The position numbers and the translations under genes were made by a program. The notes beneath the pieces are model-generated. The model saw only the letters and a list, made by a program, of their open reading frames with translations, had not been told where the DNA came from and did not search any database. A DNA stretch of 64,000 bases from positions 186,112 to 250,111 of IMG/VR virus record IMGVR_UViG_3300037086_000360, one strand, 5' to 3'. Shown in pieces: positions 1 to 28,577 of this stretch (position 1 is its first letter; each line of letters starts with the position of its first letter).

Positions 1-2
1 AT

Positions 3-278
3 CATGATGGTAGAAAATACTACGAGATTCCATTTATCTCTTCTCAAGTAGATGAATGGATAGGCGGTCTTTTTACTAAGATTGTTGTTTCTGTTGATTC
101 TGAGGAAGAAGTTCTTCAGCTTCAAAAGAAAGCGGATGAAGCAGGTATCATAAACGCAGTAGTGACTGATGCCGGACTCACAGAATTCCATGGAATTCCA
201 ACCATCACTTGTATTTCAATTGGACCAGATGATCCAGAAAAAATTGACAAGATTACTGGAGAACTACCTCTTCTATGA
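3..278 (+). CDS. pth2: Peptidyl-tRNA hydrolase type 2, C-terminal part (runs off the left edge)
   Basis: Frame 3 reads ...WIGGLFTKIVVSVDSEEE...VVTDAGLTEFHGIPTITCISIGP...IDKITGELPLL*, with the Pth2 DAGxT and IGP motifs. Absent from the ORF track because its start lies upstream. Confidence 0.92.
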   Translation, partial: HDGRKYYEIPFISSQVDEWIGGLFTKIVVSVDSEEEVLQLQKKADEAGIINAVVTDAGLTEFHGIPTITCISIGPDDPEKIDKITGELPLL

Positions 279-1954: not shown

Positions 1955-2001
1955 GAGACCATAGGCGATTCGCATATTTATTTAGTAAATAGGAGGCACC
2001 T

Positions 2002-2202: not shown

Positions 2203-2216
2203 AGAAAGATAACTAC

Positions 2217-2726: not shown

Positions 2727-2737
2727 AAGGAGAAAAT

Positions 2738-3091: not shown

Positions 3092-3097
3092 TTTTTA

Positions 3098-3965: not shown

Positions 3966-4217
3966 CTTTCATTTTAAGGATCCTATGATGAAAATAAACA
4001 AAGCCCTAAATCAGGCCTCCACTAGATCTTCCAAGGCTATTAAAATCAAAGAAATCACAAACTATGTCTACGACAAAATGATGGAAGGTGAGACGGAACA
4101 TGATGGAGACTTCTGGGATCAAATCAATACCATCGTAAAAGAAAATTACAACGAAAAGCTAACCAAGAGAGCCTATGTCAGTATAGTAAAATCAGAGGGC
4201 TTTTTCGGAGATGATTT

Positions 4218-4574: not shown

Positions 4575-4591
4575 TCCTTGAGGAGAAGAAG

Positions 4592-6006: not shown

Positions 6007-6534
6007 ATGGAAACCACCACTGTTGAAAAAAAGGTCTTCACCCCCAGGAATTACATTTGCAGCAAGGAGAAATACCTTGAGCTTAGGGCTCTTCAGAAAA
6101 AGACGATCGAAATTGGAAGACTCGATCGTCAGGCCAAGGCTGCATACATCGCTGCTCGTCGTAAGTTTTATCACGACAAGGGCATGACTGCTCCTAACCA
6201 TTGGGGCTACGATGAAAAGAAAAACGTAGCGATTGATTATGACAAGGAAAACGGGTTCAAATACGATGGACTTCAGTCTGGATTTTCCGACAAAGAGAAA
6301 GCCCGTTATTTGAACATCATTTACGGTATTGCCCGTGGAAAACCCTATGATAAAATTGAGCAAAGAATCACTGAGGGCAATGAGATCAGTGAATACCGTG
6401 TAGAGAAGTATTGTAAGCAGTTTGGAATCGATTTCTCCGCGGTAAAGGGTTTTATTTGGCCTTACAACACCGAGAAGGTTCTACCCAAAGATGGACTTGG
6501 CAAGACCACTCTCAAGATCACGAGGAAGGCATAA
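6007..6534 (+). CDS. Conserved phage hypothetical protein
   Basis: AAGGAG RBS; ARYLNIIYGIARGKPYDKIE motif. Confidence 0.65.
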   Translation: METTTVEKKVFTPRNYICSKEKYLELRALQKKTIEIGRLDRQAKAAYIAARRKFYHDKGMTAPNHWGYDEKKNVAIDYDKENGFKYDGLQSGFSDKEKARYLNIIYGIARGKPYDKIEQRITEGNEISEYRVEKYCKQFGIDFSAVKGFIWPYNTEKVLPKDGLGKTTLKITRKA

Positions 6535-6535
6535 A

Positions 6536-6898
6536 ATGGCAGATGAAGTCAAACAGGTGATTGTGGTAAATATGGCCGTTCCATTTCCTCTCGGAAGATT
6601 GATGGCTCAAATTGCTCATGCTTCCATGCTCAACATCGTTAATCGTGGAACTTGGAATGGAGACAAGTTTTCCATTGATGCGGACGATTTGGCCCTAAGA
6701 TTTTGGCTTAAGGATCATTATACAAAAGTCGTATGCAAGGCTTGGGGCAAGGAGCAGATGATGAAGATCAAAGCTGAAGCTGAGAAAAGAAAACTTTACG
6801 TTGCGCTAATGGAGGAAGAGGGGTTTATTACAGCACTCGCTATTGGTCCTGCGGATGTGAAAGATCTTTCTTTCACTGACACTTTAGCATTGGTATGA
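6536..6898 (+). CDS. Divergent Pth2-like protein
   Basis: KQVIVV...GRLMAQIAHAS...YTKVVCK...TALAIGP fits the Pth2 fold; GK is replaced by GR and DAGxT by EEEG. Confidence 0.8.
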   Translation: MADEVKQVIVVNMAVPFPLGRLMAQIAHASMLNIVNRGTWNGDKFSIDADDLALRFWLKDHYTKVVCKAWGKEQMMKIKAEAEKRKLYVALMEEEGFITALAIGPADVKDLSFTDTLALV

Positions 6899-6999: not shown

Positions 7000-7006
7000 T
7001 TTTCTT

Positions 7007-7082
7007 TCCGCTGTAGCTCGAATTTGGCAGAGCGTCTAGTCGAAAGATTAGAAGGTTGGAGGTTCAAGTCCTTCCGGCGGAG
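7007..7082 (+). ncRNA. tRNA-like RNA without an anticodon (GAAA tetraloop)
   Basis: Acceptor TCCGCTG/CGGCGGA, D and T arms nearly identical to 6927..6999; anticodon arm is TCTAGTC-GAAA-GATTAGA. Confidence 0.78.
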
Positions 7083-7105
7083 TTATTTTGCATATGTCTT
7101 TATAT

Positions 7106-7177
7106 CTCTTCGTAGCTCAACGGTAGAGCAAGAATCCCTAAAATTCTAGGTCGCGGGCTCGACACCCGCCGGAGAGG
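7106..7177 (+). tRNA. tRNA with CTA anticodon (amber suppressor-like), atypical C33 and T loop
   Basis: CTCTTCG/CGGAGAG acceptor, G73; AGAAT-CCCTAAA-ATTCT places CTA at 7138-7140; T loop CTCGACA. Confidence 0.72.
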
Positions 7178-7181
7178 CCTT

Positions 7182-7255
7182 GGTCCTGTAGCTCAGATGG
7201 TCAGAGCAACGGATTCTAACCCCGTCGGTCGAGGGTTCGAGCCCCTCCAGGATCT
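7182..7255 (+). tRNA. tRNA with CTA anticodon (amber suppressor-like)
   Basis: GGTCCTG/CAGGATC acceptor; ACGGA-TTCTAAC-CCCGT places CTA at 7216-7218 (A31.C39 mismatch); canonical T loop. Confidence 0.72.
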
Positions 7256-7756
7256 CTAGATAGTTGGATCGTGAAGTTTTTTGATTGCGTATGAGAATGC
7301 GCTATAAAAGTCTTTTGAAGAAACCCACTTATTCCTTAGAATTACCCTTTCACTTTCTTCATCGAAGAAAACACGGATCAAATCTTTAGCATTTTTCAAC
7401 ATCCATTTATCATATCTATGAATTCGTTTTGCCAAGTATGTGTAAGCAATGTCGAACATTAGTTCATAATCTTTTTCAGTTTGTACTGGTGGTAAATCTT
7501 TTTTGACTCTATATGGTCTGAGATTTCTCCACTTACTCGTTGCACTTGGCCAATTTGTTTCAGCAGAATAGCCTCTAATCACACCCTGCGCAAATACCGT
7601 GATTTTGTCATCAGCTACATCAGGATTGCCACTGAAGTCAATGTTTCCATGACTGAGTTGGGCTGGAGTGGTAGTATCTCGCCAACCAAGAGAAATGATA
7701 TCTTTATACGATGGCAACTGTTTGATTTTTTCATGGTCAAAATTGAAATGTTTCAT
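7256..7756 (-). CDS. Hypothetical protein (start MKHFNF)
   Basis: Lone minus-strand gene; a GTAAGATA motif lies just upstream on the minus strand. Confidence 0.65.
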   Translation of the reverse strand: MKHFNFDHEKIKQLPSYKDIISLGWRDTTTPAQLSHGNIDFSGNPDVADDKITVFAQGVIRGYSAETNWPSATSKWRNLRPYRVKKDLPPVQTEKDYELMFDIAYTYLAKRIHRYDKWMLKNAKDLIRVFFDEESERVILRNKWVSSKDFYSAFSYAIKKLHDPTI

Positions 7757-9732: not shown

Positions 9733-10752
9733 ATGGGACACTCTATGGACTACAAGAAGTTTCTGTCTGGAATAAATCTCGAACTCAACAAACAATTGAG
9801 GATACAAGAAGACTTCACTGATCAGCTTTCAACTGCCATGGCCAAGAAGCAATCTGTTTGGGATGCTGAAGAGGAGCAAGAGAAGGCCGCAAAAAACGCA
9901 GCTCAAACAGCTTCTCAATCACCAGATCAAACAACTTCTCAACAAAATTCAAAACCAGAAGATTCTGGCAGAACGACTACTCCGTTGATCTTTTTCAAAG
10001 ACAAAACTACTTATACTTTGCAACAATTTCTAAATGTAAGAAATTTGATTCTATATGATTTGGGAAGACCAAAGAAACTTCCGGAAATCAAATATACCCC
10101 ACAACAAGACAAAGAACAACAGACAGCAGAACACAGATCGCGTCAAACTGCTGCAACTCTTAAGCCATTAGAGGTCAAATTTTTGGAATGGATAAAAAGA
10201 GAGGCGAACAATGGTCCAAAGTCTGATATAGACAGCTTCTTACGAAAACAGGATGGTACTTTTAATGAAGATGGCATCAAGCAGCTTCGACAAATGTTCC
10301 TTACATATGTAGGTAGTCAATATAACGCCAGAGTAGTTAAAAATCCAAAAAATGAAAATCCAGTTCTCGCTAAGGCTATAGAAACTTTTGGTCAAAAGTA
10401 TGAACTGAACACTCCTCAAACAAAAGGACAAACAGTAGCAATTGGGCTTCATGCCCCTAGTCCAGGAACAGCTGACCAAATAAAGCAAAATGTTTTGAAT
10501 GGAATAGCTTTTGGAGGTGGATATGAGGGTAACACCCCGTTGAAAAATGGGCAAATCGCCCAGTGGTGGAAAGAAGTTCAGCCCTATCTAGATAGATTTA
10601 CAGACACTAAAAAGGCCCTCAATTTTGGCATTCAATATGCTGGTTTCAAAAAGGGGATTGAAGGAGTAATCGATCCAACCATTGCTCTTCAACAAGAACA
10701 GTCCATTAACAACTCTTTCATTCAGAAACTTCGTTCTCAATTGTTAGCATAA
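9733..10752 (+). CDS. Hypothetical protein, 339 aa
   Basis: Long ORF preceded by the GTAAGATAAT motif. Confidence 0.7.
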   Translation: MGHSMDYKKFLSGINLELNKQLRIQEDFTDQLSTAMAKKQSVWDAEEEQEKAAKNAAQTASQSPDQTTSQQNSKPEDSGRTTTPLIFFKDKTTYTLQQFLNVRNLILYDLGRPKKLPEIKYTPQQDKEQQTAEHRSRQTAATLKPLEVKFLEWIKREANNGPKSDIDSFLRKQDGTFNEDGIKQLRQMFLTYVGSQYNARVVKNPKNENPVLAKAIETFGQKYELNTPQTKGQTVAIGLHAPSPGTADQIKQNVLNGIAFGGGYEGNTPLKNGQIAQWWKEVQPYLDRFTDTKKALNFGIQYAGFKKGIEGVIDPTIALQQEQSINNSFIQKLRSQLLA

Positions 10753-10761
10753 TTCCTTTAT

Positions 10762-12594
10762 ATGAATCAACCAACTCCCAAAGCTCCCAACATGCGTAAA
10801 AATATCGCTATTGTGGCCATACTGCTAATAGGCTATTTTGTTTTTCAGTTTTTTATTGGAGGTGGAACTACTCCAGAAATCAGCTATAGTACTTTTAAAA
10901 AGGCCCTAATTGACGGTAGGATCCAACAAGTTTCTGTTTCAACTACTGAGATCCGTGGAGTAATGAAAGATAAAGAAATTGAGAAGCAGTTTTCAACCAT
11001 TCGCGTAGATGATCCAGAATTGACGAAATTACTCGAATCCAAAAATGTTCAATACTCTGGAAAAATCCAGAGCAACTTCTTATCCAATCTTTTATGGATC
11101 ATAATTCCTTTTGCTCTTCTATATTTCTTTTTCATGCGACAAACTGGTGGAGCGGGCACTAATGTTCTCTCATTTGGAAAGAGTAGGGCGAAACTCAACC
11201 AACCTCTGATTGGAAAAAAGATCTCATTTAAAGATGTCGCTGGAGTTGATGAGGCGAAAGAAGAGCTTCAAGAGGTTGTAGATTTTCTGAAGACTCCCCA
11301 GCGCTTTCAGCAATTGGGTGGAAGAATCCCTCGTGGAATCCTTTTAATTGGAGCTCCTGGCACCGGCAAGACACTTCTTGCAAGGGCGGTCGCCGGAGAG
11401 GCTGGGGTTCCATTTTTCAGTATTTCTGGATCTGAGTTTGTTGAAATGTTTGTAGGAGTTGGAGCTGCGAGAGTAAGAGATCTCTTCGCTCAAGCGATGT
11501 CAAAAGCCCCTTGTATCGTTTTTATCGACGAACTTGATGCCCTGGGAAGAGCTCGAGGATTTTCTCCAGTTGGTGGATTTGATGAGAGAGAGCAAACTCT
11601 CAACCAACTCCTTACAGAGATGGATGGTTTTGATACTCGAGTTGGCATCATCATCATGGCTGCTACGAACAGACCGGAGATTCTTGACTCAGCTCTCATG
11701 AGACCTGGAAGATTTGACCGACAGGTTCTTGTTGATAGGCCAGATCTTGTTGGTCGAGAAGCCATTCTCAAGGTTCATTCAGAAGGGATCAAGATGGCTG
11801 AGAACGTTGATCTCAAAACCATTGCTCAGAGAACTCCAGGATTTGTCGGAGCAGATCTCGCCAACATCATGAATGAGGCAGCCCTTCTTGCTGCAAGACG
11901 CAACAAGACTGAAGTTATGATGGATGAGTTTAGTGAGGCTATCGATCGTGTTGTTGCTGGTCTAGAAAAGAAAAAAAGGCTGATCAGTCCATCAGAGAAG
12001 AAAATTGTGGCTTATCACGAGGCTGGTCATGCCATTGTTTCCCATTTCTCTGGAAAGGGTGATGAAGTCCATAAGATTTCCATTATTCCTCGTGGAATTG
12101 CTGCTCTTGGCTACACAATCAATCTTCCTACAGAAGATCGTTACTTGATGACTCAGAAAGAGCTTGAAGCAAGGCTCGCTACTCTTCTTGGTGGAAGAGT
12201 CGCGGAAGAGCTCTTCATTCAGGACGTTTCCACTGGAGCCTCAAGTGACCTGATGAAGGCAACAGAGATTGCGAAAGCTATGGTCAAAGAATATGGAATG
12301 AGCTCTCTTGGACTTTCTTCTTATGAGAGACCATCAAATCCATTTCTCAAAGATAATTCTTTCTTCCCTTCTGAAAAAGATTATTCAGAAAAAGTAGCGG
12401 CACAAATTGATGAAGAAGTTAAAAACATGCTCATTAAAGCACACGATAAAGCTGTGGTTATCCTTAACACCAAGAAACAGCTTATGGAAGACTTGTCGAA
12501 ACTTCTTCTTGAAAAAGAAGTCGTAGAGAAAGATGAGTTTATAAAACTCATGACAGAAGAGAAGCTGGAAGAATTGCCGCGCGCAGAAGCATAG
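10762..12594 (+). CDS. ftsH: ATP-dependent zinc metalloprotease FtsH
   Basis: Two TM segments, Walker A GAPGTGKT, Walker [37 protein letters not shown]. Confidence 0.98.
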
Positions 12595-12602
12595 TTTATG
12601 CT

Positions 12603-12986
12603 ATGCGTGATGAAAAACCGCATGGCGAATATGTCTCGATGAAGCTCAGAAAGGAGTATGAAACGGACTTTCAGTCCATGATCGATAAGTGGTATGAGGT
12701 CAATTTAAGCTCAAACCGCTTCCTTGTTTGTATTGAGGGATTTGAGTGGAATGATTGGCATAAAGACTATTTGCTTCATGGCCATATTATCAACTACAAT
12801 AACAATAAAGCAGCAATGGTAGTCAGTGATTTTGGTAGATACTACTCCGAAATTAGAGAATCGTTTCCACTATGGAAACGCAAAAAAGTAAAGGACAAGA
12901 AGCTTCTAAAAGCGATCAATGTCGCCTTTTATGCTCAAACAGCAAAAGCTCTCTTGGGTGAAAGACATGAGCGAGAAACCTATTAA
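12603..12986 (+). CDS. Hypothetical protein
   Basis: 127-aa ORF abutting ftsH. Confidence 0.55.
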   Translation: MRDEKPHGEYVSMKLRKEYETDFQSMIDKWYEVNLSSNRFLVCIEGFEWNDWHKDYLLHGHIINYNNNKAAMVVSDFGRYYSEIRESFPLWKRKKVKDKKLLKAINVAFYAQTAKALLGERHERETY

Positions 12987-13656
12987 TCTTTTTGATGGAG
13001 CGTGGAAGAAGCGCCCAAATGGTTTCTTCGAACTTGATCATGATCGAGTAGAAGAAAATGAAAAAAAAGCTAAGGCTCAGAGAGGATCTCCTCTTCTCGA
13101 AAAAATATATGAGAGACATAAGAGTGAAATCTATCACGCCAAAAAGAACTTCAATTGGTTCAGAAAAATGAGAAGCAGGCTTGAGCGTCTCAATAATATG
13201 CACCCAAAACAAATCTATATTTGGGGCCACACTGATATTGAAGGAACTAAGGCTGAGGGTTGTAAATACGCTTGGGAAGACGTTGAAATAGCTCTTCCAA
13301 CTATTTTCAGACGTCTCCATATGAGATGGATCACAACCATTCTGGCTGAATCTTGTTTCAAATCTGATTTGGACGAAGCCATTCGTTTTGGAAGTGAGTG
13401 CCCAGTTCTTGAACCTGAATATCCTCAGGACAACTTTGACGTTATGTATGTCAAGGGAAAAGAAGAATTCAATGATGAGAATGACGTCATCGAAGCTTTC
13501 AAGAAGTGGAGAGACTTCTTCCTTCCTAATCTCAAGAATGTTCCTATTGTTTGGAAGGAAATGAGTCCCAACTCGCTCACTTGGTCGATCTTCAAGTCGA
13601 AGAGTTTTCCAAGAATACGAATGTTGCTTGCCAATCTAAAACGAAAAACTTCCTGA
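12967..13656 (+). CDS. Hypothetical protein
   Basis: Long ORF; likely start MSEKP. Confidence 0.6.
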   Translation: MSEKPINLFDGAWKKRPNGFFELDHDRVEENEKKAKAQRGSPLLEKIYERHKSEIYHAKKNFNWFRKMRSRLERLNNMHPKQIYIWGHTDIEGTKAEGCKYAWEDVEIALPTIFRRLHMRWITTILAESCFKSDLDEAIRFGSECPVLEPEYPQDNFDVMYVKGKEEFNDENDVIEAFKKWRDFFLPNLKNVPIVWKEMSPNSLTWSIFKSKSFPRIRMLLANLKRKTS

Positions 13657-13738
13657 AAAACAAAAATGAATTCGACACTCGTGCAAGATACTATCTATAA
13701 GACTATACACCACCCATGTGGGAGGAGAAAGCAACTAA

Positions 13739-14836
13739 ATGGATGAATCTGACAAACAAGACCAGGAGTTCCCTCCAGGTACAGTGCCATCGGACCAGTG
13801 GAATGACTGGCGATGGCAAATGCGGAATCGAGTTAAAAACATTGAAGACATTAAGACATTGGGATTATGGAAAGATGACACATTGCCTAATCCAAAGCGT
13901 CTTCCCTTCACGGTAACCCCTTATTATTTGAAAGTCGCTCTCAATTCGAAAGCTCTTCAAAAAACTTTCGTGCCGAACATGAGTGAAAACATTGTGACAT
14001 CTGACTGTACGGATGATCCTCTTGCAGAAGAACATGACTCTCCTGTCAAATGCATCGTACATCGATATCCAGACAGAGTTCTGTTCCTTGCAACAGATCT
14101 TTGTGCTACTTATTGTCGCTATTGTACAAGAAGCCGAGTGATAGAGCAAAATGGATTTACTAAGTCTGAGTGGGAAAAGGGATTCGAATACATCAGAGAA
14201 CACGAAGAAGTTCGAGACGTTCTTATCTCTGGTGGAGACCCTCTCACATATGACGATGATAATCTTGAGTATTTGATTTCAAGCATTAGAGCAATTTCTC
14301 ATGTCGAAATCATAAGAATTGGTACCAAAGTTCCAGTCGTTCTTCCCCAAAGAATAACCCCAGAACTGGTGGCAATGCTTAAGAAGTATCATCCGTTATT
14401 CATGAGCATTCATTTCACCCATCCCGACGAACTCACAGAGGAATGTAAGACTGCATGCTTAATGCTTGCTGATGCAGGAATCCCTCTCGGAAGTCAAACA
14501 GTTTTGTTGAATGATGTGAATGATAATCTCTATATTCTGAAAGCTCTGTTCCAGGGTCTGTTAAAGATTAGAGTTCGCCCCTATTATCTCTATCAGTGTG
14601 ATGTTGTTCAAGGAGCTGCCCATTTTAGAACTCCTTTGGACGTGGGCATCAGGATGATTGAGGGATTAAGAGGATGGACTTCTGGATATGCTGTTCCACA
14701 ATTTGTAATTGACTTACCGAATGGTGGTGGAAAAACACCGGTCATTCCAAATTATGTGGTTGGAACTGAAGGAAAGAACATTGTCTTCAGAAATTATGAG
14801 GGCCAATCCTATCTCTTTCCCGATATAGCATCATGA
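13739..14836 (+). CDS. kamA: KamA-family radical SAM enzyme (lysine 2,3-aminomutase-like)
   Basis: WNDWRWQ, HRYPDR, CATYCRYC (CxxxCxxC), SGGDPL and the PLP-lysine motif GGGKTP. Confidence 0.93.
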   Translation: MDESDKQDQEFPPGTVPSDQWNDWRWQMRNRVKNIEDIKTLGLWKDDTLPNPKRLPFTVTPYYLKVALNSKALQKTFVPNMSENIVTSDCTDDPLAEEHDSPVKCIVHRYPDRVLFLATDLCATYCRYCTRSRVIEQNGFTKSEWEKGFEYIREHEEVRDVLISGGDPLTYDDDNLEYLISSIRAISHVEIIRIGTKVPVVLPQRITPELVAMLKKYHPLFMSIHFTHPDELTEECKTACLMLADAGIPLGSQTVLLNDVNDNLYILKALFQGLLKIRVRPYYLYQCDVVQGAAHFRTPLDVGIRMIEGLRGWTSGYAVPQFVIDLPNGGGKTPVIPNYVVGTEGKNIVFRNYEGQSYLFPDIAS

Positions 14837-14904
14837 AATATGGTGGTAGTATAACGGAACATGTCATAGCATAGTGGAACATGCCGTAGCATAATTTATT
14901 CATA

Positions 14905-15063
14905 ATGATTTACACCTATGAACTCTATTGTAAAAGATGTGATAGGATAGTTATCCTTGAGACTGATGTACGGGTAGGAAAAAAACCAAATTGTCCGAGT
15001 TGCAATCATAAGTTGCACGAGAAGAAAGATAATTTGGTTGCCTCTACAGGAGAAAACGAATGA
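14905..15063 (+). CDS. Small zinc-ribbon protein (52 aa, not in the ORF track)
   Basis: MIYTYELYCKRC...PNCPSC; ends in an ATGA overlap with the next gene. Confidence 0.65.
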   Translation: MIYTYELYCKRCDRIVILETDVRVGKKPNCPSCNHKLHEKKDNLVASTGENE

Positions 15064-15596
15064 AAAAATTCATTGTTATATTGTTGGCTCTTTTGTTTAT
15101 TGCGCCATTTGCAATGGCTGATTTTAAGATTGGAATTTCGGGAAATTTTGAATTTACGACAAATTCCCAATTGCAGTCATTGCAGTCGGGAGATCTCACC
15201 AAACTCATCAGACCTGGAATATATTTGGAACTATATGACCCAATGGGTTTTGGAATCGATTTAACGGCAGTTACCACACTCCCAGATTCAAGCAACAACA
15301 TTGTATGGTTTGCCACTATTGATCCAACATTCCATTTTCTGAATCTCAAGATCATTGATTTATCAATTTTTGCAGGACTTGGAGTAACTGGAGAAAATGC
15401 CACGGACTTTAGTAAGATAAATGCAGCAGCGTGGTTTTTTCAAATTGGTGGTGGTCCCTCGCTTCTGTTAGGACCACTATTTGTTCAAGCAAGAGCAGCA
15501 GTTAGATTTCAAATTGGAAATGGACAATTGGGATCTATAGCACCACTAAGTTTCGATGATATTGAATTAGCGCTTATAGCGGGCCTCAAACTGTAA
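15060..15596 (+). CDS. Secreted or outer-membrane beta-barrel-like protein
   Basis: Signal peptide APFAMA; alternating amphipathic strands; C-terminal ALIAGLKL. Confidence 0.6.
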   Translation: MKKFIVILLALLFIAPFAMADFKIGISGNFEFTTNSQLQSLQSGDLTKLIRPGIYLELYDPMGFGIDLTAVTTLPDSSNNIVWFATIDPTFHFLNLKIIDLSIFAGLGVTGENATDFSKINAAAWFFQIGGGPSLLLGPLFVQARAAVRFQIGNGQLGSIAPLSFDDIELALIAGLKL

Positions 15597-15601
15597 AGAA
15601 C

Positions 15602-15624
15602 AGGGGGCTTACGCCCCCTTTTTT
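15602..15624 (+). terminator. Intrinsic terminator
   Basis: AGGGGGC-TTAC-GCCCCCT followed by TTTTT. Confidence 0.8.
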
Positions 15625-15922
15625 ATTACTGGAGCCACTATGAAAAAAGTAATTATTAACTTTAGAAAGAAGAAAATTGATATTTCGTTTGGTAGATGGG
15701 ATCCAAAATTGAACTACTATGATCTCAAACGTACTGATGGTGATAATGAATATGAGGTCAAACCACCTCGACATTGTTTCTTCTACCACAAGTATGAATG
15801 GGGTGAAAAGGAAGTGTATATTGAATTTTTAAGATTTCACTTATCAATTAGCATACTTGATAACGATAGTGCCAAGTCTCAAATAGGCAGGAAAAAGGAT
15901 TCTTAAAAAAATCCAAATTTAT

Positions 15923-16009
15923 GGAGTCCGGGCAGGCCGGTAATGCAGCAGATTGCTAATCTGTACAACCCTTCATCGGGTTGACCGAGTTCGATTCTCG
16001 GGGGCTCCG
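15923..16009 (+). tRNA. trnS: tRNA-Ser(GCT)
   Basis: GGAGTCC/GGGCTCC acceptor, GCAGA-TTGCTAA-TCTGT, long variable arm, G73. Confidence 0.9.
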
Positions 16010-16053
16010 CTCAATTGGAAGGATTGTGGAGACCTTCCGGAAAGGATTTTATC

Positions 16054-16698
16054 ATGGAGGACGTGCTCTCTCTCAATGTTCTTGTCTTGAACAGGTCTTA
16101 CAAGCCTATCAAGATCATCTCAGCCAAGAAGGCTCTTATTCTGCTCTACAAAACAGTGGCAGAAGTTATTCAGGTCGAGGATGGTAATTATTCCAACTAC
16201 GACTTTAATAGCTGGGCTGAGGTGTCTGCTTATAGGAGAGCATATGAAGACAATCCAGAGATGGACTGGATTTTCACGCCGCAGCTGACGATCAATGTTC
16301 CTCGCGTCATCAGAGTTTTGACGTTCGACAAGTTTGTCAAGTACAACGTCAAGTTGAACCGCAGAAACATCTATGCTCGTGATGGAGACACTTGTCAGTA
16401 CTGTGGTAAGAAGCACCAGAAGAAGCACTTGAACATCGACCACGTTGTGCCAAAGGTGGCGGGTGGTAAGACGATTTGGGAAAACCTCGTTGTCTCTTGT
16501 TTCAAGTGCAACACCAAAAAGGGTGGTAGGACTCCTAAGGAAGCGGGCATGACCTTGCTCAAGTCACCTAAGAAGCCAGACTTCACTCCATCCCTCAGGA
16601 TCCACATCGGAAACAAGAAATATGAAAGTTGGCGTCAGTTTGTAAACGATGCATATTGGTTGGTCTCTATCGAGGATGAGAAGATTGAAGAGGAATAA
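16054..16698 (+). CDS. HNH endonuclease
   Basis: VLVLNRSY...NRRNIYARDGDTCQYCG...IDHVVP...WENLVVSCFKCNTKKG. Confidence 0.92.
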   Translation: MEDVLSLNVLVLNRSYKPIKIISAKKALILLYKTVAEVIQVEDGNYSNYDFNSWAEVSAYRRAYEDNPEMDWIFTPQLTINVPRVIRVLTFDKFVKYNVKLNRRNIYARDGDTCQYCGKKHQKKHLNIDHVVPKVAGGKTIWENLVVSCFKCNTKKGGRTPKEAGMTLLKSPKKPDFTPSLRIHIGNKKYESWRQFVNDAYWLVSIEDEKIEEE

Positions 16699-17117
16699 TG
16701 CGACGATGGCTTACAGCATGGACACCTGAGTTAGCAAGAAAAGAAATGATAGCCAGGGAGCTTAGAAGAACTAGGCCCCTGGTTTCTTTTCCGCTTCTCA
16801 AAAAAGTGTACGACAAATTTGGAATCTTTTGGGTGACAATGCACCATGTTGAAGATATGGATGAACATCTCTGGAGTAAAATGCATGATCTAAATAGACA
16901 TGGACTCTTAGAGCTTTCTGAGTGGAAAAAAGAAATCAATCCAACTCCCTCAAGAGGTCAAAAACTTGCAAACTATTGGAGAGTAACTCCACTTGGTTTG
17001 ATAGCCCTTACAAAATTTTATAGTGTCAAAGATGAAGACGTACACAAAGTTAGCAAATATTTGTTGGACCCAGAAGGAGATAAGAATGAGGCGACTGTCT
17101 TGGCAAAACGATATTGA
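16698..17117 (+). CDS. Hypothetical protein
   Basis: Coupled to the HNH stop. Confidence 0.55.
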   Translation: MRRWLTAWTPELARKEMIARELRRTRPLVSFPLLKKVYDKFGIFWVTMHHVEDMDEHLWSKMHDLNRHGLLELSEWKKEINPTPSRGQKLANYWRVTPLGLIALTKFYSVKDEDVHKVSKYLLDPEGDKNEATVLAKRY

Positions 17118-17697
17118 ACCCGAGATTCCAGACAGAAAATTACCGATAAACAACAATAAAAAAGATGATGATCAACAATTGGTCGAACACATTGATGGTC
17201 ACATTTACTTTTATTCAGATGTGACTTCCCTATCAGTAATTAAACTCAACAAAGTAATAAGAGAAATCACAAACAATATGCTTCCATATAAAGAAGATGG
17301 ATTGGTGTTGAAGCTTCATATCAACAGTGATGGTGGAGTTCTTCTTGATGGACTTGCCGCTCTCGATTCAATTATTTCTAATGCACTTCCCATCCATACC
17401 TATGTAGAAGGTGGAGCTGCCTCAGCCGCCACTCTTATTTCAGTCGCAGGTAAAAAAAGATTCATGCACAGACACTCTTTCATGCTTATCCACCAAATGT
17501 CAAGCAGACTGTGGGGCAAGTATGAGGAGATAAAAGACGACAAAGAAAACTGTGATCGATTCATGAAAATGATCAAGGATATTTACAAGGAATATACAAA
17601 AGTTCCTATGAAAAAGATAGATGAAATTCTCAAACATGATTTGTGGTTTGACGCAGATCAATGTCTTGAATATGGGATGATAGATGAGATAGTCTAG
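17086..17697 (+). CDS. ClpP-like serine protease
   Basis: INSDGG, GGAASAATLI (catalytic Ser), MLIHQ (His), DLWFDADQCLEYGMIDEI. Confidence 0.9.
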   Translation: MRRLSWQNDIEPEIPDRKLPINNNKKDDDQQLVEHIDGHIYFYSDVTSLSVIKLNKVIREITNNMLPYKEDGLVLKLHINSDGGVLLDGLAALDSIISNALPIHTYVEGGAASAATLISVAGKKRFMHRHSFMLIHQMSSRLWGKYEEIKDDKENCDRFMKMIKDIYKEYTKVPMKKIDEILKHDLWFDADQCLEYGMIDEIV

Positions 17698-17790
17698 AGA
17701 TTTTATGCGACAGACGGATAAGATAACTAACTCAGGCTTCACGTGAAGCCAAAATTAAGCATATTTCTATTTACCTTATAGGAGGAATGA

Positions 17791-18279
17791 ATGAAACGTC
17801 TATTTCTTATCTTGGCCCTTGCCTTGATTGGCACATTGGCTTTCGCTGCAACAACGGGAACTATTACTCTCAATGGAATAGTTGCAGCCAGCACAAACAT
17901 TACAGTTACACCACAGGCTGGGTTCAATACTCTTGATCTCACCACAACTGCAACTAATGTCTTGGTGGCAATAATCAATGAACAGACCAACGACCATAGT
18001 GGATATACGGTTACAGTTGCCTCGGCCAACTTGGCAGGAGCCGGAACTGCGCCTTTCTTAAAAGATGTTGCTAGTGGAAATACTTGGCTTTATACACTTC
18101 AATATAATGCAGTCGCCGTAGTGTTTGCAAGTGGAGTATCAACAATATCAAATACTGTCGCAATGACTGTACCAGCGGGAGTTAATAAGAACCTCAACAT
18201 ATCATATGTTGGAACCAATACCCTTGCTGCGAGCAACGCTTACGCCGATACTCTTACGTTTACAATTGCAGGAAAATAA
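17791..18279 (+). CDS. Major pilin (Csu/spore-coat-U-like)
   Basis: Signal peptide TLAFA; Thr/Ala/Gly-rich beta protein; C-terminal YADTLTFTI. Confidence 0.75.
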   Translation: MKRLFLILALALIGTLAFAATTGTITLNGIVAASTNITVTPQAGFNTLDLTTTATNVLVAIINEQTNDHSGYTVTVASANLAGAGTAPFLKDVASGNTWLYTLQYNAVAVVFASGVSTISNTVAMTVPAGVNKNLNISYVGTNTLAASNAYADTLTFTIAGK

Positions 18280-19013
18280 TGAAACTCAATAGAAATAGCC
18301 AGGCTGGTTTGACTAGTCTGGCATTTTTGTTCTTCTTTTTGGTGAGTGTTGGTGTAGCCTCTGCCTTCAGTTTTTCACCAATCAGTTTAAGTTTCTCTCC
18401 ATCTGGTGAAAACACAATCCAAAGTTTCAAGCTTACCAATACCTCAGATGTCACAGTAGCAATCAAAGTTACCATGGTATCTCGTGAAATGGCTGTCGAT
18501 GGAACTGAGACTTTGAAACCAACCGATTTATTTGCCATCTATCCATCAAGAATTATTCTCGACGCAAGCTCGGTCCAAATTGTAAAGGTTCAGTGGAAGG
18601 GACCATTTGATGTTTCAATGGAACAAAACTTCAGGATCATTGCTGAACAAGTTCCTGTTGATTTCAATGGCCCAAAGCCAGTAAATATTAGAATCCTTAT
18701 CCGCTATATGGGAGCCATTTATATTACTCCCTCAAATGCCGTTCCAAACGTTGTCCTAGACTCAGTCAAACACGACACACAGAACCTTGCTATTACACTC
18801 TACAATAAAGGAAATGCCCATGTTCTTATGAGCAACTTGACACTTCAAGTCAAGACAAGTGAGTCCTTTAAAATTTATTCTCCCGAGGAACTAAAGGGCT
18901 TCAATGGAGAGAATATGCTTGCAGGTTTGAAGAGAACCTTTGTTGTCCCTCTCCCTCCAGACATGAAGGGCGAAGATTTTAGTGTCACGTTTAAGTTTGA
19001 TTCGATTCGTTAG
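18279..19013 (+). CDS. Periplasmic fimbrial chaperone (PapD/CsuC-like)
   Basis: FSPISL...FKLTN...IYPSRIIL...EQNFRIIAEQVP...N.GNAH. Confidence 0.88.
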   Translation: MKLNRNSQAGLTSLAFLFFFLVSVGVASAFSFSPISLSFSPSGENTIQSFKLTNTSDVTVAIKVTMVSREMAVDGTETLKPTDLFAIYPSRIILDASSVQIVKVQWKGPFDVSMEQNFRIIAEQVPVDFNGPKPVNIRILIRYMGAIYITPSNAVPNVVLDSVKHDTQNLAITLYNKGNAHVLMSNLTLQVKTSESFKIYSPEELKGFNGENMLAGLKRTFVVPLPPDMKGEDFSVTFKFDSIR

Positions 19014-21306
19014 AATCATATTCTTTCTTCTCACAATCTCATCTTTTTCAGCCCAAAGCTCGAATATTGTTCCTCTTGATTTTACTATTAATGAACAATC
19101 TCAAAAAACAATCAACTGCATCATTGTTGATAACCAACTATTGTCTATAGATAGAACAAAGTTGATTGAAGTTGTTCGTCCCATTCTAGATGAATCAACC
19201 TTCTTTAAGCTTCAAAATGAAATAGCAAACAAAGATTTCGTGCCTCCAAAAGATTTAGAGAAATATGGTATTATATCAAAATATGATTCCAATTTGTTGA
19301 AGCTGGAACTAAATATTCCTATTCAAGAACAAAGGGTTCAAGTCCTTAGAATGCCTGGCAGCTCGATTCCAAACTATGTTGCCGCAACTCCAGCAGATTT
19401 CAGTGTCTACCTTAATATGAGAACAACCATGAATCTGCAGACAGCATATGATATCCAAAACTCTATAACCTTGCCCACTCAGCTTATCCTTCAACCTGTG
19501 ATTAACTACAAAGGATGGGTTCTTGATACCAGCGTGACAAGTAGTGTCATTGAGTACCCTAGCATCAGCCTCGATTACGCTAGAGTTGTTCATGATTTTC
19601 CAGACAACTCACAACGACTCACTATTGGTTCCGTCTTTTTCCCAACTACTGCTTTTATGGCACCATTTCCTGCTTATGGAGTTGAGTTCACGCGCAATCC
19701 AATCATGACTCAAGCTCTTCGAAGTCCATATCTCATTCGACAAAGCTTTGAACTTTCTCAGCCATCTGCAGTAAGTATCATACTCAACGATAGAACTCTG
19801 GAGTCCTATCAATTGAATTCAGGCAAATATGTCCTTCCAGATATTCCTTTCATTGGAGGGTTAAATGACTTAGTCATAAATACAAATGGCCAAATAACCC
19901 ATACTGAAGTTTCGTATGATGCGAGACTTCTCGTTGAAAATGACATGTCGTATTCTGTGAACGTAGCAATTCCACAATGGGAGCTACAAGTTCCAATATT
20001 TTCAGGCTATTTCCTGTATGGAATCCTTCCATTTCTAACTGTTGGTGTCAATATGCAGGCAGGACTTGGCCGTCAAATGGAAGGAGTTGAGGCTGTTTAT
20101 TCTACTCCATATGGAAGTGTTCATGGACAGTTTGGATTGAGTGAAAGTCCAATCGATTTTGCGGCAGAAATCGACTATCGACTTGTATTTGCATATGGAA
20201 ATCTCCGTCCTACCGTGACCTTCAGCGCCCAATACACTGGACAAAACTTCTTACTCCCAGGTTTTGATTACAACAGCAACATTTACGCCTGGCTTTTTTC
20301 TGCAAGCTACGGTCAATCTCTTCCATATGGCATTGGGCTTAGCTTGGGGGTTGGATACCAAGTGGGATTGAGTCCAAACCCCGATCAAGCAAGTGCGAAT
20401 ATTACTCTCACAAAACAAATCTTCAAAGATACAAACATAAGTTTGATGTTCACAGTTGCCTACCAAGCAGGCAATCCATTGAAGTTTGAAGGATATTTTG
20501 GTCTAGCTTCTGTTGCACTTGGAGGTAAAGAGACCACCAACTTCAACTCCCAGCTTGATGGGCAATCAGCCTCAGTAAATGCCACCTATCAGCCAAATCA
20601 GAGTCTTCCGATGTTTTCAACTTTCTTGGCAAAGAGTCCAGATTTGAATGGGGCTATTTCGGCGAACTATAATGTGCCATTCACTGAAAGTTCATTGACA
20701 GAATCTTTTTCACCAACAACAAACAGTCTCGTTCTCTCTGCCGGTGTGGCGATTGTAATGGTCGAAGGTCATTTTGGAATCACAAGACCAATCTCAGATA
20801 GTTTTGCTCTCATTATTCCTCAAGACAATATGGCTGGTCAAACTGTCGTTGCAAACAAGCAGGCTGAAACCTATGATGGCATGGCTATGAAAAACTTCAA
20901 CATTGGTCTTTCACAGTTGCCATCCTATACCTTAGATCTAGTGACCCTTAGTTCTCCTACCGCCCCTATAGATACGAACGTGGGAGACAGTATAAGAGTC
21001 ATGAAGCCAACTTACAAGAGTGGAATCGCTCTATTTGTTGGAACAAAGGCAGCAATTTCCATAAAAGGAAAGCTCACATTTAATGGACAGCCTTTCACTT
21101 ATCAATCAGGACAAATCAAAGGAAATACTAGTGTCACCTTTTTCACAGATGAAAATGGAGATTTCGAAGCCTACGGTTTGAGTCCAGGAGATTATCAACT
21201 CACCATCAATGATCTTGAGGGATACAGTCAGAAAATTACAATCCCAATAGCAGCCCCGGCTTCTTATAATATAGGAACGATTGTTGTTCAGGAGAAAAAG
21301 CAATGA
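18982..21306 (+). CDS. Fimbrial usher
   Basis: 774-aa beta-rich protein with usher-like segments (RLTIGS..F, GL.PG.YQL), located between chaperone and adhesin. Confidence 0.85.
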   Translation: MSRLSLIRFVRIIFFLLTISSFSAQSSNIVPLDFTINEQSQKTINCIIVDNQLLSIDRTKLIEVVRPILDESTFFKLQNEIANKDFVPPKDLEKYGIISKYDSNLLKLELNIPIQEQRVQVLRMPGSSIPNYVAATPADFSVYLNMRTTMNLQTAYDIQNSITLPTQLILQPVINYKGWVLDTSVTSSVIEYPSISLDYARVVHDFPDNSQRLTIGSVFFPTTAFMAPFPAYGVEFTRNPIMTQALRSPYLIRQSFELSQPSAVSIILNDRTLESYQLNSGKYVLPDIPFIGGLNDLVINTNGQITHTEVSYDARLLVENDMSYSVNVAIPQWELQVPIFSGYFLYGILPFLTVGVNMQAGLGRQMEGVEAVYSTPYGSVHGQFGLSESPIDFAAEIDYRLVFAYGNLRPTVTFSAQYTGQNFLLPGFDYNSNIYAWLFSASYGQSLPYGIGLSLGVGYQVGLSPNPDQASANITLTKQIFKDTNISLMFTVAYQAGNPLKFEGYFGLASVALGGKETTNFNSQLDGQSASVNATYQPNQSLPMFSTFLAKSPDLNGAISANYNVPFTESSLTESFSPTTNSLVLSAGVAIVMVEGHFGITRPISDSFALIIPQDNMAGQTVVANKQAETYDGMAMKNFNIGLSQLPSYTLDLVTLSSPTAPIDTNVGDSIRVMKPTYKSGIALFVGTKAAISIKGKLTFNGQPFTYQSGQIKGNTSVTFFTDENGDFEAYGLSPGDYQLTINDLEGYSQKITIPIAAPASYNIGTIVVQEKKQ

Positions 21307-22214
21307 AATCACGAATCATTTTAATCTTGTTGATGTTTATGTCTCTTTCAATTGGAGCCCAGACATTAACTTTTTCAGTTCCTCCAGGAAATCCTACTGG
21401 AACCTATTCTCCTGATACTGGTGTTACTATAGTTAGCACAATGACTATTCGGCATACTGGAGCCGCTTGTAGCTATTTTATCACTTTTGCTTCTGGATCA
21501 TCTGGAACCTTCACATCAAGAACAGCAAAAAGTGGTGCCAACATTCTCAACTATCAAATCTATGACAACATAACCAATAAAAATGTTCTCGAGGATTTGA
21601 CAGCGAGTCCAACATCTGCAAATGTGTTGAGTGGTTCTTTCGCAGCAGGAACTGCGACTCAGGTCCAAACATTCACAAGCTATGTTGCAACAACACAACT
21701 TCCTCCGGTTGGAACCTACACAGATGCTATAAGAATGGACATTTATATTGGAACAATAGCCGCTCACGGGGCATCTGTCAGAAATCGTACCTTCACAGAA
21801 ACCATGACTGTTCCAACTCTTCTCGACATATGCCTCGTTCCAACCGGTTCGTCCTTCAATGTTGCAAGCACTTCTACCACTTTCAACTTTGGAACTCTTT
21901 CAACTGGACAAAATCTTGGTGATGATTTCATGGTGAGATCTAATGGATTAAACACAGTGAAGGTCACTTCTACAAATGGACAAGTGTTAAAGAATGCTAT
22001 TAGTGGAGATATTAGTTCAGTTCCATATATCTTTGCTGTTAATGCTGTTGCATACACACTACCAGCCGCCACTGCTGTAACCATCATAGCGAGTCAACCA
22101 GCAACTGTAGCGACTGGAAAGCGATACCCAATTCTAGTAACCATAGGCACCATAGGGTGGGTCAGTGCGGCCACATATACAGACACGATCACTTTTACCG
22201 CAACTGCAAACTAG
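21303..22214 (+). CDS. Two-domain tip pilin/adhesin (CsuE-like)
   Basis: Signal peptide; LNYQIYD, PVGTYTDAI and ATYTDTITF spore-coat-U-like motifs in two domains. Confidence 0.8.
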   Translation: MKSRIILILLMFMSLSIGAQTLTFSVPPGNPTGTYSPDTGVTIVSTMTIRHTGAACSYFITFASGSSGTFTSRTAKSGANILNYQIYDNITNKNVLEDLTASPTSANVLSGSFAAGTATQVQTFTSYVATTQLPPVGTYTDAIRMDIYIGTIAAHGASVRNRTFTETMTVPTLLDICLVPTGSSFNVASTSTTFNFGTLSTGQNLGDDFMVRSNGLNTVKVTSTNGQVLKNAISGDISSVPYIFAVNAVAYTLPAATAVTIIASQPATVATGKRYPILVTIGTIGWVSAATYTDTITFTATAN

Positions 22215-22657
22215 CATACTTTAGATAAATTCATAGAAAGAATTGTTGATGACTAAGAAAACTCTCGAAAGATATGCATCCCAGATTAATGCTCCACAAT
22301 TAGACGATGATAAAGATTTGGTAGAAGAAGCCAAAATGCTTCTCGGCGACACAACATTCAGAATGTTGCCCAGGAGCAGTAGAATTTATTACATGCGACT
22401 CTTCGTAAAACATCGCTTTTTCAAAGTTAGATGTCACAAATGCAGAAAAAGAGTCAATGATTTATATGATTTCATTCAATTCAAAAATCCTACATGGTGT
22501 ATGGACTGTATGAGAAATGAGAGTCCAAATACTCTCTTTGAAATCAAGGAAAGCGTAGAGGAATTCATTTAGATTTTGCATATTTCTAAACACATGAATA
22601 TTCGGAAGTGAATGATATTTCTAAGAGAATGTTGAAAAAGAAAATAGGAGAAAATAA

Positions 22658-23500
22658 ATGGGAATAATTCGCACACACTGCGCACTCATCCTCGATAAAA
22701 GCGGGTCGATGGGCGGTATCAAGGATTCTGCTCTCAACAATTTTAACGAGCAGATCCAGACTCTAAAAACAGAGTCAAATTCACCAGATGCCATTGCCAA
22801 GAAGATGTTGATAAGTGGTGGAAATCCAACGGGAGTTGAGACATATGTCACTCTCGTAGCATTCAACGACAATGTCGAATTTTTGAACTTTGATCAGAAC
22901 ATTAATGACATTGAAGAGTTTCCAGCTGAAAAATACGCACCAAACGGCTCAACAGCACTCTTTGATGCCATTGGAATGACGATTGACCGTTTTACCAGCG
23001 AGATCCAAGGACTTGATGATCCAGATACTGGAATGTTGTTCATCATTATCACTGATGGACAGGAAAATGCCTCTAAGTCCTGGGGACAGGAAGATGGAAG
23101 AAAGAAGCTGAAGTCAAGAATAGAAGAGCTTCAAAACTCAAAGAAATGGACTTTCACATTCATTGGTTCTGAAAAGGTCATGGAGACCGCCGTTGATCAT
23201 CTGGGTCTCTATGCTGGAAACACCGCTTCCTTTGCAGCTACCGCTGGTGGGATCAGGGGCGCTTCAGTTCAAATGTCTGCTGGAACTAGAAGCTACATGT
23301 CAGCAAGAATGCTACATAAGACCTCTATAGATTCATATTACAGTGGCGATGATGACGCTACTGGTCCTACAGTTGTTCCACCAGTTGATCCTCTCACCGG
23401 AATTGACGTAGCAAAGATCAAGTTGATGGAAGAAGCCATCAAAAAGAGTGCACTGAAGAAACAAACAACAGTTTCCGAAGAAGATAAAGAAGAAGCATAA
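22658..23500 (+). CDS. vWA-domain protein
   Basis: LILDKSGSM (DxSxS), GSTALFDAIG, IITDGQEN. Confidence 0.92.
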   Translation: MGIIRTHCALILDKSGSMGGIKDSALNNFNEQIQTLKTESNSPDAIAKKMLISGGNPTGVETYVTLVAFNDNVEFLNFDQNINDIEEFPAEKYAPNGSTALFDAIGMTIDRFTSEIQGLDDPDTGMLFIIITDGQENASKSWGQEDGRKKLKSRIEELQNSKKWTFTFIGSEKVMETAVDHLGLYAGNTASFAATAGGIRGASVQMSAGTRSYMSARMLHKTSIDSYYSGDDDATGPTVVPPVDPLTGIDVAKIKLMEEAIKKSALKKQTTVSEEDKEEA

Positions 23501-23693
23501 AATATGACTCTGATTGAAATGAGAGAAGTTCGAAAGCGAAGAATGCAGAGAACTCGTATTTTTCGTAGAGGACCTAGCATATATAAAAGCGTTGAGAACA
23601 ATAGTGAAGTGAATTCACCAGGGGAGGCGATAGATAATGATTCACTTCACCAGCACAACAACGCTGCTGCATGTGTAGCAGCGGTACTTTGAA

Positions 23694-23968
23694 GGGGCCG
23701 TAAAGGTTTCGACTGAACAGTGTTGGGCTTAGCCGAAGTTTTTCTACAAAATAGACGCGAATAACTTCGCTCTCGCGGCATAGCCGCTCACCTAACGGCA
23801 TTTAGTTTTTTGCTTCTAGCTGTTGGGTAACAAAAAGCAAAGAACGGGTTCATTCAATGAAACTCCCGTAAAAAAGCGAATTGTGGTATTTAGAATCCAC
23901 CACTCTACGGTTCTACGGCAGGCGAAGGTCCTTTGTTCAGGACGGGATTTCGATTATCCCCGGCTCCA
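23694..23968 (+). ncRNA. ssrA: tmRNA, 275 nt, tag (A)ANNFALAA*
   Basis: GGGGCCG...TTCGAC 5' end; GGGAT-TTCGATT-ATCCC-CGGCTCC-A 3' end with G3.U70; AAAATAGAC upstream of GCG AAT AAC TTC GCT CTC GCG GCA TAG (23757-23783). Confidence 0.92.
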
Positions 23969-23977
23969 TTTCCAGAC

Positions 23978-27687: not shown

Positions 27688-27688
27688 A

Positions 27689-28576: not shown

Positions 28577-28577
28577 T

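Follow-up and report, generated by a model that had tools for sequence, protein, structure and literature searches.

A tmRNA, a ClpP-like peptidase, two Pth2 genes and a full-length FtsH of putative Spirochaetia origin in a conserved accessory block of a very large peat phage lineage

Huge phages with genomes above 200 kb were reported to carry dozens of tRNAs, a transfer-messenger RNA (tmRNA), SmpB and release or rescue factors (Al-Shayeb et al. 2020, PMC7162821). In jumbo phages the peptidyl-tRNA hydrolase PTH2 and a patchily distributed, non-virion ClpP have been described, and ribosome rescue after tRNA cleavage was proposed (Iyer et al. 2021, PMC7824862). The Pseudomonas jumbo phages MIJ3 and PA5oct encode an FtsH-like homologue of the host AAA+ zinc metalloprotease, of unknown function (PMC6892783), while the megaphage G possesses a tmRNA, ClpP plus ClpX, and a suppressor tRNA (PMC12484599). 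In case of Melnitz, a marine lytic myophage, a complete tmRNA was described, the upkeep of the hijacked machinery or the marking of host proteins for recycling being its proposed role (PMC9004378). Here we describe a stretch of 64,000 nucleotides (the window) of the IMG/VR virus record IMGVR_UViG_3300037086_000360, in which a tmRNA, a ClpP-like peptidase, two Pth2 genes and a full-length FtsH are encoded, and compare it with these systems.

The window corresponds to bases 186112-250111, the last 64 kb, of the 250,111-bp record. An earlier note on this DNA had seen in it a phage toolkit for ribosome rescue and proteolysis. The genes concerned are the following (window coordinates):

1..278, + strand: Pth2a, 3' part of a 132-amino-acid Pth2 (PF01981), which the window start truncates; complete at record 185991-186389, i.e. 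window -120..278
6491..6898, + strand: Pth2b, divergent Pth2 paralogue (PF01981); start probably at about 6536, the relative's gene having 120 amino acids
10762..12594, + strand: FtsH, full-length membrane-anchored AAA+ zinc metalloprotease, 610 amino acids (Pfam and TIGR01241)
17086..17697, + strand: ClpP-like serine peptidase, 203 amino acids (PF00574), member of a phage-borne family
23694..23971, + strand: one-piece tmRNA with the tag ANNFALAA (ARAGORN, 23694-23968; Rfam RF00023)

According to our preferred reading, to which we give about an even chance, these genes belong to a conserved accessory block of a very large peat phage lineage with a Spirochaetia-derived FtsH, in which the tmRNA and the ClpP-like peptidase would form a functional pair and FtsH and Pth2 would be plausible helpers. 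The idea of a phage repertoire for rescue and proteolysis is not new; tmRNA, Pth2, ClpP and FtsH-like proteins have each been reported on jumbo phages already. New are the conservation of a full-length FtsH of apparently spirochaetal origin in a huge-phage lineage, the recurrent neighbourhood of tmRNA and ClpP-like genes, and the evidence against the head-maturation label of the ClpP-like family.

With the huge phages of PMC7162821 the record shares the genome size above 200 kb, the dozens of tRNAs, the tmRNA and factors for termination or rescue, for which the proposed role was sustaining translation during infection. Those phages were reported with SmpB beside the tmRNA, whereas none was found in the record, and the paper does not mention FtsH, Clp or peptidyl-tRNA hydrolase. 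As in the jumbo phages of PMC7824862, a Pth2 of the archaeo-eukaryotic type resides on a large phage; here, however, there are two paralogues, one of them without the catalytic loop and located beside amber-suppressor tRNAs, and no ClpP-tmRNA linkage was described there. Phage G is likewise a very large phage uniting a tmRNA, a ClpP and a stop-codon suppressor tRNA, but it has its own ClpX, of which the record has none, its tag is AKLNITNNELQVA and its host belongs to the Bacillota. The tmRNA of Melnitz is also complete and phage-encoded, but it is a two-piece molecule accompanied by a glutamine riboswitch and located upstream of a transcription coactivator, and neither Clp nor protease occurs as a word in the main text of PMC9004378. 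The locus resembles bacterial trans-translation in the alanine-identity G3:U pair, in the tag ending with ALAA and in the ClpP-fold and FtsH proteases encoded beside the tmRNA. It differs in that SmpB, ClpX, ClpA and SspB are not encoded, the N-terminus of the ClpP-like protein is different and the tmRNA is short.

The record was classed as linear by IMG/VR, and its completeness was 88% according to the CheckV estimate. Among its open reading frames (ORFs) of at least 300 amino acids, 48 of the 53 lie on the + strand, and the record holds a single tmRNA and 63 tRNA genes, which cover all amino acids and are spread over 160 kb. The largest ORFs matched phage replication families (DnaB, a split DNA polymerase, helicases) and none of them matched portal, capsid, terminase or sheath families; Terminase_6N and HK97-capsid searches of the 250-kb record gave no match either. 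Since no structural genes were detected, we take the record, judging from its gene content, to be the non-structural part of a larger genome. The true genome may far exceed what the CheckV value implies, the closest relative contig being 732 kb long. Genetic code table 11 was used throughout, as the stop codon use shows no recoding (it was even, with TAA 65, TAG 61 and TGA 55, and TAG-joined frames were not in excess). The late and structural genes, where TAG recoding might otherwise show, are missing from the record. The block was unmatched in a megablast search against GenBank phages.

The closest FtsH homologue was found on a contig of 732,019 bp which comes from a different metagenome and is independent of the record. 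Comparisons with this relative rest on 21.8 kb taken from it (L045). Window positions 4218-24241 are collinear with positions 2702-21753 of L045, the common order being Pth2b, an odd tRNA, two tRNA(CUA), an ORF (332 amino acids in L045), FtsH, two ORFs, a radical-SAM aminomutase, tRNA-Ser(GCU), an HNH endonuclease, an ORF (143 amino acids in L045), the ClpP-like gene, a VWA-like gene and the tmRNA. Synonymous sites are saturated between the two phages, and the ratio of nonsynonymous to synonymous substitution rates (dN/dS) was 0.04-0.10 for FtsH, Pth2b, the radical-SAM gene and the VWA-like gene. The block genes are under purifying selection, and since they recur gene for gene on an independent contig, the arrangement exceeds chance.

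The earlier note had named a host-phage chimera as the outcome that would undo its proposal, i.e. an assembly error or misclassified host DNA in which a spirochaete chromosome with FtsH and tmRNA is joined to a phage. Such an origin would agree with the 67-71% identity of the phage FtsH to cellular Spirochaetia FtsH and with the lack of terminase, HK97 capsid or any other structural gene among those found in the 250-kb record. However, the 732-kb contig, assembled from another sample, has the same order and an FtsH 83% identical, with dN/dS well below 1; thus the block is not a host-phage chimera. In addition, the neighbours of cellular ftsH genes are absent, the GC content is even over the whole block, peat DNA runs of several other studies hold pieces identical to the window, and all genes lie on one strand together with homing endonucleases and PHROG replication genes. 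We regard a chimeric origin as scarcely credible.

Aligned to the full-length T. maritima FtsH (7TDO), the phage FtsH keeps the Walker A and B motifs, the MFVG pore loop and the second region of homology, while its M41 domain keeps HEAGH and the conserved Asp in GASSD. The Pfam domains FtsH_ext (residues 16-102), AAA, AAA_lid_3 and Peptidase_M41 were all detected, the equivalog TIGR01241 (NCBIfam) was passed with 787.1 bits against a cut-off of 600, and hydrophobic helices at residues 13-37 and 105-128 flank the periplasmic domain. The Asp of GASSD is presumably the third metal ligand, as in the T. maritima structure. The gene is thus intact, as the earlier note had claimed, with two membrane helices and all catalytic motifs. 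In contrast, the match to the PA5oct-type protein spans only residues 104-517 of the peat FtsH at 44% identity; the peat protein differs from those of MIJ3 and PA5oct in being full length (both helices, the periplasmic domain and a complete M41 domain are present) and in passing the equivalog cut-off. The claim that a full-length FtsH is unusual on a phage was borne out as well: among the 50,697 GenBank phage records, only the PA5oct-like jumbo phages have an FtsH-like gene in a credible context, and that gene is shorter. The FtsH of 'Microcystis phage MaAM05' (55% identical) was not counted as a phage protein, as it lies amid bacterial purB, proS, lepA and glgX.

The phage FtsH is 83% identical to the L045 copy (dN/dS 0.056), the next best being the cellular FtsH sequences labelled as Spirochaetia with 67-71%. 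In a quick tree, the support of which is SH-aLRT only and the faulty outgroup row of which (L091) is to be disregarded, the two phage proteins are sisters on a long stem among Spirochaetia-labelled sequences; the earlier note had suggested a phylogeny against host copies. Cellular Spirochaetia ftsH genes have TyrRS and PFK on one side and a TP_0454-domain gene and Mfd on the other; none of these is beside the phage ftsH. Judged by its sequence, the phage FtsH is derived from Spirochaetia. In 301 genomes from the phylum to which one 'Spirochaetales' metagenome-assembled genome belongs, the best FtsH identity was 60%, so that the donor lineage was not among them, and a scan of genome contigs with FtsH gave relatives at 48-60% only, missing the Spirochaetia group with 67-71%. 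FtsH is a protease that degrades ssrA-tagged and membrane proteins. By analogy, the phage FtsH may degrade tagged or membrane proteins, or it may form mixed hexamers with the host FtsH.

The tmRNA passed the Rfam model RF00023 with 60.6 bits (gathering score 47) over model positions 1-374, corresponding to 23694-23971. It is short, 278 nucleotides against a model of 374 positions, and much of the pseudoknot region is missing. The acceptor stem has a G3:U pair, the T-arm is present and CCA is not encoded. The tag frame, GCG AAT AAC TTC GCT CTC GCG GCA TAG, has an Ala resume codon and encodes ANNFALAA followed by a stop; the tmRNA with an ALAA degron proposed in the earlier note is therefore real. 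In L045 the tag is ANTFALAA and the codon of the last Ala has changed only synonymously, while one acceptor pair and the entire T stem show compensatory changes between the two phages. In two spirochaete-labelled genomes the tags likewise end with ALAA (ADANYALAA and ANNNGNFALAA), and the latter, from a Spirochaetaceae genome, resembles the phage tag.

A 257-nucleotide contig of a peat metatranscriptome covers exactly 23706-23962, i.e. the tmRNA only, and in another peat RNA library a 739-nucleotide contig covers 23237-23975 at 4-7 times the depth of the other pieces. These contigs fit a stable tmRNA transcript and the tmRNA is probably expressed; it counts against this that they give no strand or ends and may come from DNA carry-over, which leaves transcription unproven. 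In one peat RNA library a 152-nucleotide variant of the tmRNA was also observed (over 23756-23904, with 12 differences and one insertion), which indicates a related strain in that library.

The ORF of the ClpP-like peptidase covers 17023-17697, and 17086 is the likely start, matching the gene of the relative. PF00574 was detected with E=1.7e-26, the match beginning at profile position 45, and Ser113, His136 and Asp185 were invariant in the family alignment (n=31), in agreement with the catalytic Ser and His recognised in the earlier note. Its view of a full toolkit was overstated in that the protein fails the canonical ClpP cut-offs (47.7 against 308.6 bits for TIGR00493 and 76 against 249 for PRK00277) and has no canonical N-terminal axial loop, and in that one of the Pth2 proteins has lost its catalytic loop. 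Instead of the axial loop, the N-terminus of the family consists of MKDxxW and a variable acidic linker. The AlphaFold2 model had a pLDDT of 80, residues 1-29 being disordered (pLDDT <50). All top Foldseek matches of the model were ClpP (probability 1.00) with modest TM-scores of 0.45-0.55 and a large root-mean-square deviation, probably due to a handle helix placed differently in the monomer model.

With its homologues at 45-55% identity the protein belongs to a tight family, about 200 amino acids in length, which has the invariant triad and an N-terminal motif of its own. At least 507 IMG/VR stretches encode a relative, and none above about 32% identity was found in the 50,697 GenBank phage records. 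On phage contigs the neighbours of the family are PhoH, glycosyltransferase, polymerase-clamp and exonuclease genes. No shared small partner was detected, the flanking ORFs forming many unrelated clusters of which none is shared with the window; the 139-amino-acid ORF that overlaps the ClpP-like start had no homologue 5' of the ClpP-like genes of other phages.

Annotation would make the ClpP-like protein a prohead (head-maturation) protease with no part in ribosome rescue. Its best PHROG match was phrog_94, 'head maturation protease' (4e-38; PHROG has no curated threshold), and the GenBank phage matches at 27-31% identity were mostly prohead proteases. The best NCBIfam match, NF045542 'head maturation protease, ClpP-related', reached 100.9 bits, but this is below the cut-off of 120. 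Moreover, no portal, capsid or terminase gene adjoins the ClpP-like gene in this phage, in its relative or in any of three further contexts, and the C-terminus of the protein is as in ClpP, without a scaffold or capsid-targeting extension. Five records with a tmRNA/ClpP-like pair were searched whole, and four of them, both complete ones included, have a gp21-type Peptidase_S77 prohead protease of their own, about 80 kb from the ClpP-like gene in these T4-like phage records; no SmpB, Clp ATPase or Pth2 was found in the five. The head-maturation label of the family is not supported, and we find a capsid role of the protein very improbable. We conclude that the family represents an auxiliary peptidase linked with phage tmRNAs and not the capsid protease.

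The tie to tmRNA came from the comparison of phage loci. A same-strand tmRNA, always upstream of the ClpP-like gene, was present in 18 of 176 distinct viral loci, 343-4750 nucleotides away and within 500 nucleotides in 12 of the 18, and ten different tags occur among them. Ten linked tmRNAs checked with Rfam scored 109-131 bits. On the family tree the linkage is spread, with at least 7 changes on well-supported branches, and does not form one clade. As a control, 39 other viral loci (562 kb) were inspected and no tmRNA was found; the share of phage genomes with a tmRNA is only 2.3% (PMC9004378). In marine uncultivated T4-like phages (L191, L233, L271, L338 and others) the ClpP-like gene is part of a tmRNA/tRNA array, in which tRNA genes separate it from the tmRNA and others follow it closely. 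By its recurrence in other phages the link between tmRNA and the ClpP-like gene has comparative support. No description of this neighbourhood was found in the literature searched.

Pth2a was recognised by PF01981 with 110.9 bits and by TIGR00283 with 115.8 bits (cut-off 82), and in a full-length alignment to archaeal Pth2 structures its GK and DAGxT motifs are kept. Pth2b passed Pfam only (PF01981, 56.9 bits against a cut-off of 23) and remained below the NCBIfam Pth2 cut-offs (36.2 against 82 and 46.5 against 126 bits); a 7-residue deletion removes its DAGxT loop, and Asp is changed to Glu and Lys to Arg. It is nevertheless 90% identical in L045, with dN/dS 0.075. As catalytic residues we assume the Lys and the Asp/Thr loop, after the work on S. 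solfataricus. Pth2 frees the tRNA from dropped-off peptidyl-tRNA. From its conserved motifs, Pth2a can be expected to free tRNA from peptidyl-tRNA, while Pth2b is probably not a normal hydrolase. Pth2 genes within about 24 kb had been claimed and two were found (1-278 and 6491-6898), inside such a span although outside positions 10762-23968, to which the earlier note had assigned the toolkit. Directly 5' of Pth2a, at record 185677-185961, there is a putative 94-amino-acid RNA-binding protein of the RNA-recognition-motif type, as judged by eye. An RF-1 domain protein of 132 amino acids, which is the size of ArfB, is encoded at record 142550-142948 (PF00472, 45.5 bits); its GGQ motif is not clearly kept and reads GNGGM.

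Pth2b is followed by a tRNA cluster:

7006-7083, + strand: tRNA with an 8-nucleotide anticodon loop, directly 3' of Pth2b (ARAGORN, Rfam)
7106-7179 and 7182-7256, + strand: two amber-suppressor tRNA(CUA) (ARAGORN, Rfam)

The cluster (7006-7256) scored 40.9-61.1 bits with the Rfam tRNA model and has the same order in L045 (5859-6204). Likeness to the other tRNAs of the phage gave no clear assignment of the amino-acid identity of the suppressors. Read-through and additional ribosome stalling would be expected from them, and this could itself give rise to a need for the tmRNA. The specific purpose of the set might be protection against tRNA- or mRNA-cleaving host defences, as the earlier note had supposed. 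The 63 tRNAs for all amino acids, the tmRNA, the two Pth2 genes and the RF-1 domain protein of the record suit this explanation, and the same logic was proposed for the tRNAs and PTH2 of jumbo phages (PMC7824862). However, RtcB or an RNA ligase was not encountered near the block, no search being aimed at them, and the same genes would serve equally a long, translation-heavy infection or the clean-up after the phage's own amber suppressors. We consider a dedicated counter-defence improbable.

In the mechanism that we propose the tmRNA would be charged by the host alanyl-tRNA synthetase (AlaRS) and delivered by the host SmpB and EF-Tu, on which it must depend, since SmpB was lacking in the record. 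Ribosomes that have stalled would be released by it and the unfinished protein would receive the tag ANNFALAA, after which AAA+ proteases would degrade the tagged products. Because the phage tag ends with ALAA like the spirochaete-labelled tags, both host and phage proteases reading ALAA-type degrons could act on these products, by analogy with bacterial ssrA tags. The ClpP-like core would provide the chamber for proteolysis, with substrates probably supplied by a host unfoldase; it would either borrow such an unfoldase via a non-canonical contact or act on peptides alone. We infer the aminoacylation, the tagging, the degrading protease and the benefit to the phage, as well as the coupling of FtsH and Pth2 to the tmRNA. 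A farther-reaching version, which we put forward tentatively and hold to be somewhat doubtful, is that the phage-specific ClpP family is the dedicated partner of phage tmRNAs, in a 'tag and destroy' cassette that would use host SmpB and a host unfoldase, would occur widely among uncultivated T4-like and huge phages, and would be joined here by a captured spirochaetal FtsH as a second outlet for tagged proteins.

Several observations weigh against the functional pair and its helpers. In the 250-kb record, which is possibly a fragment, SmpB was not detected (no PF01668 match at E<=1), nor was ClpS or any AAA_2 match above the cut-off that would indicate ClpX or ClpA. Host partners are therefore needed and every step depends on host factors; the idea of the earlier note that the phage supplies its own tagging, release and degradation did not hold in full, and the pathway is not self-sufficient. 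The N-terminal loop is the contact of ClpP to its ATPase (PMC4416901), and to judge from its different N-terminus the ClpP-like protein may not dock to ClpX at all. About 90% of the ClpP-like loci have no tmRNA nearby. The distance between the two genes is 6 kb here and 3.4 kb in the relative, and their order is the reverse of that in the marine phages. No tmRNA was found at the viral loci carrying FtsH, and the marine tmRNA/ClpP-like phages have no Pth2. Since tRNA genes flank the marine ClpP-like genes, adjacency could also reflect a shared variable region instead of function.

The last points, together with the 63 tRNAs and the RF-1 domain gene scattered over 160 kb of the record, speak for separate gains, i.e. 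a tRNA-rich region which collects accessory genes, each of them working alone (translation support, membrane-protein quality control, some peptidase role). The four genes are also separated by unrelated ones, namely a radical-SAM aminomutase, an HNH endonuclease, an outer-membrane beta-barrel protein and a pilus-like block which the relative lacks, a further point on which the view of a toolkit was overstated. On the other hand, the tmRNA and the ClpP-like gene adjoin closely: they share a strand, in most cases with less than 500 nucleotides between them and with the tmRNA always upstream, and this recurs in several clades, while the order of the block is kept between phages with saturated synonymous sites. 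Separate, unlinked gains are in our opinion unlikely. The earlier proposal is thus supported in part: the genes are real and intact, co-occur in a relative on an independent contig, and include a ClpP-like family tied to tmRNAs, while the part of FtsH and Pth2, like the counter-defence purpose, would be conjectural.

The other genes of the block, which conserve its order between the two phages or interrupt it, are as follows:

9733..10752, + strand: 339-amino-acid protein of no family, ending 9 nucleotides before ftsH, conserved in L045
12603..13656, + strand: two ORFs (127 and 245 amino acids) directly 3' of ftsH, 46% and 77% identical in L045
13739..14836, + strand: KamA-family radical-SAM aminomutase (PF04055, PF12544, TIGR00238)
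15923-16010, + strand: tRNA-Ser(GCU) (ARAGORN), order kept in L045
16015-16698, + strand: HNH endonuclease (Pfam/PHROG), order kept in L045
16698..17117, + strand: 139-amino-acid ORF, overlapping the ClpP-like start, conserved in the relative only
22658..23692, + strand: VWA-like protein (280 amino acids) and 62-amino-acid ORF, directly 5' of the tmRNA, conserved in L045

The 339-amino-acid protein had no Pfam, PHROG or NCBIfam match, and an Atlas search with its poor model gave no usable match; it is 57-59% identical in L045 (dN/dS 0.13). The 127- and 245-amino-acid ORFs had no Pfam, PHROG or NCBIfam family either. The radical-SAM gene scored 304 bits with TIGR00238 (cut-off 199) and 441.6 bits with AblA, below the cut-off of 525; its closest likeness is to lysine 2,3-aminomutase, that to the EF-P modifier EpmB being lower, and it is 84% identical in L045. 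The VWA-like protein and the 62-amino-acid ORF, with a weak von Willebrand factor A (VWA) match and a match to phrog_7371 (1.2e-32), are 81% and 75% identical in L045. The N-terminus of a 178-amino-acid signal-peptide protein (15060-15596) matches the Treponema TDE1717 family of outer-membrane beta-barrels, as would suit a host among the spirochaetes. Four genes at 17791-22214, which separate the ClpP-like gene from the tmRNA and are absent from the relative contig, resemble a chaperone-usher pilus operon of the spore-coat-U/Csu type; they encode a 162-amino-acid signal-peptide protein and proteins of 244 (weakly Ig-like), 774 and 303 amino acids (SCPU PF05229, 30.3 bits). Beyond the tmRNA, AAA+/MoxR-like ATPases are encoded at 25288-27687 and 33777-34883 (phrog_1297, 3e-85) and three phrog_1314 proteins at 27689-28576, 28527-30101 and 35332-37143, so that 25288-37143 looks like repeated CobS/CobT-type pairs of ATPase and VWA protein.

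The full-length FtsH, which purifying selection has conserved in both huge phages, is so far the clearest example of a complete membrane AAA+ protease retained by a phage, and it points to spirochaetes as the gene source and as the probable hosts of this phage lineage, whose genomes may be as large as 700 kb. For the ClpP-like family the annotation is corrected, as thousands of its metagenomic proteins bear the head-maturation protease label without support. To the question of why phages carry tmRNAs, a protease gene travelling with them in many unrelated phages would offer a concrete, testable partner.

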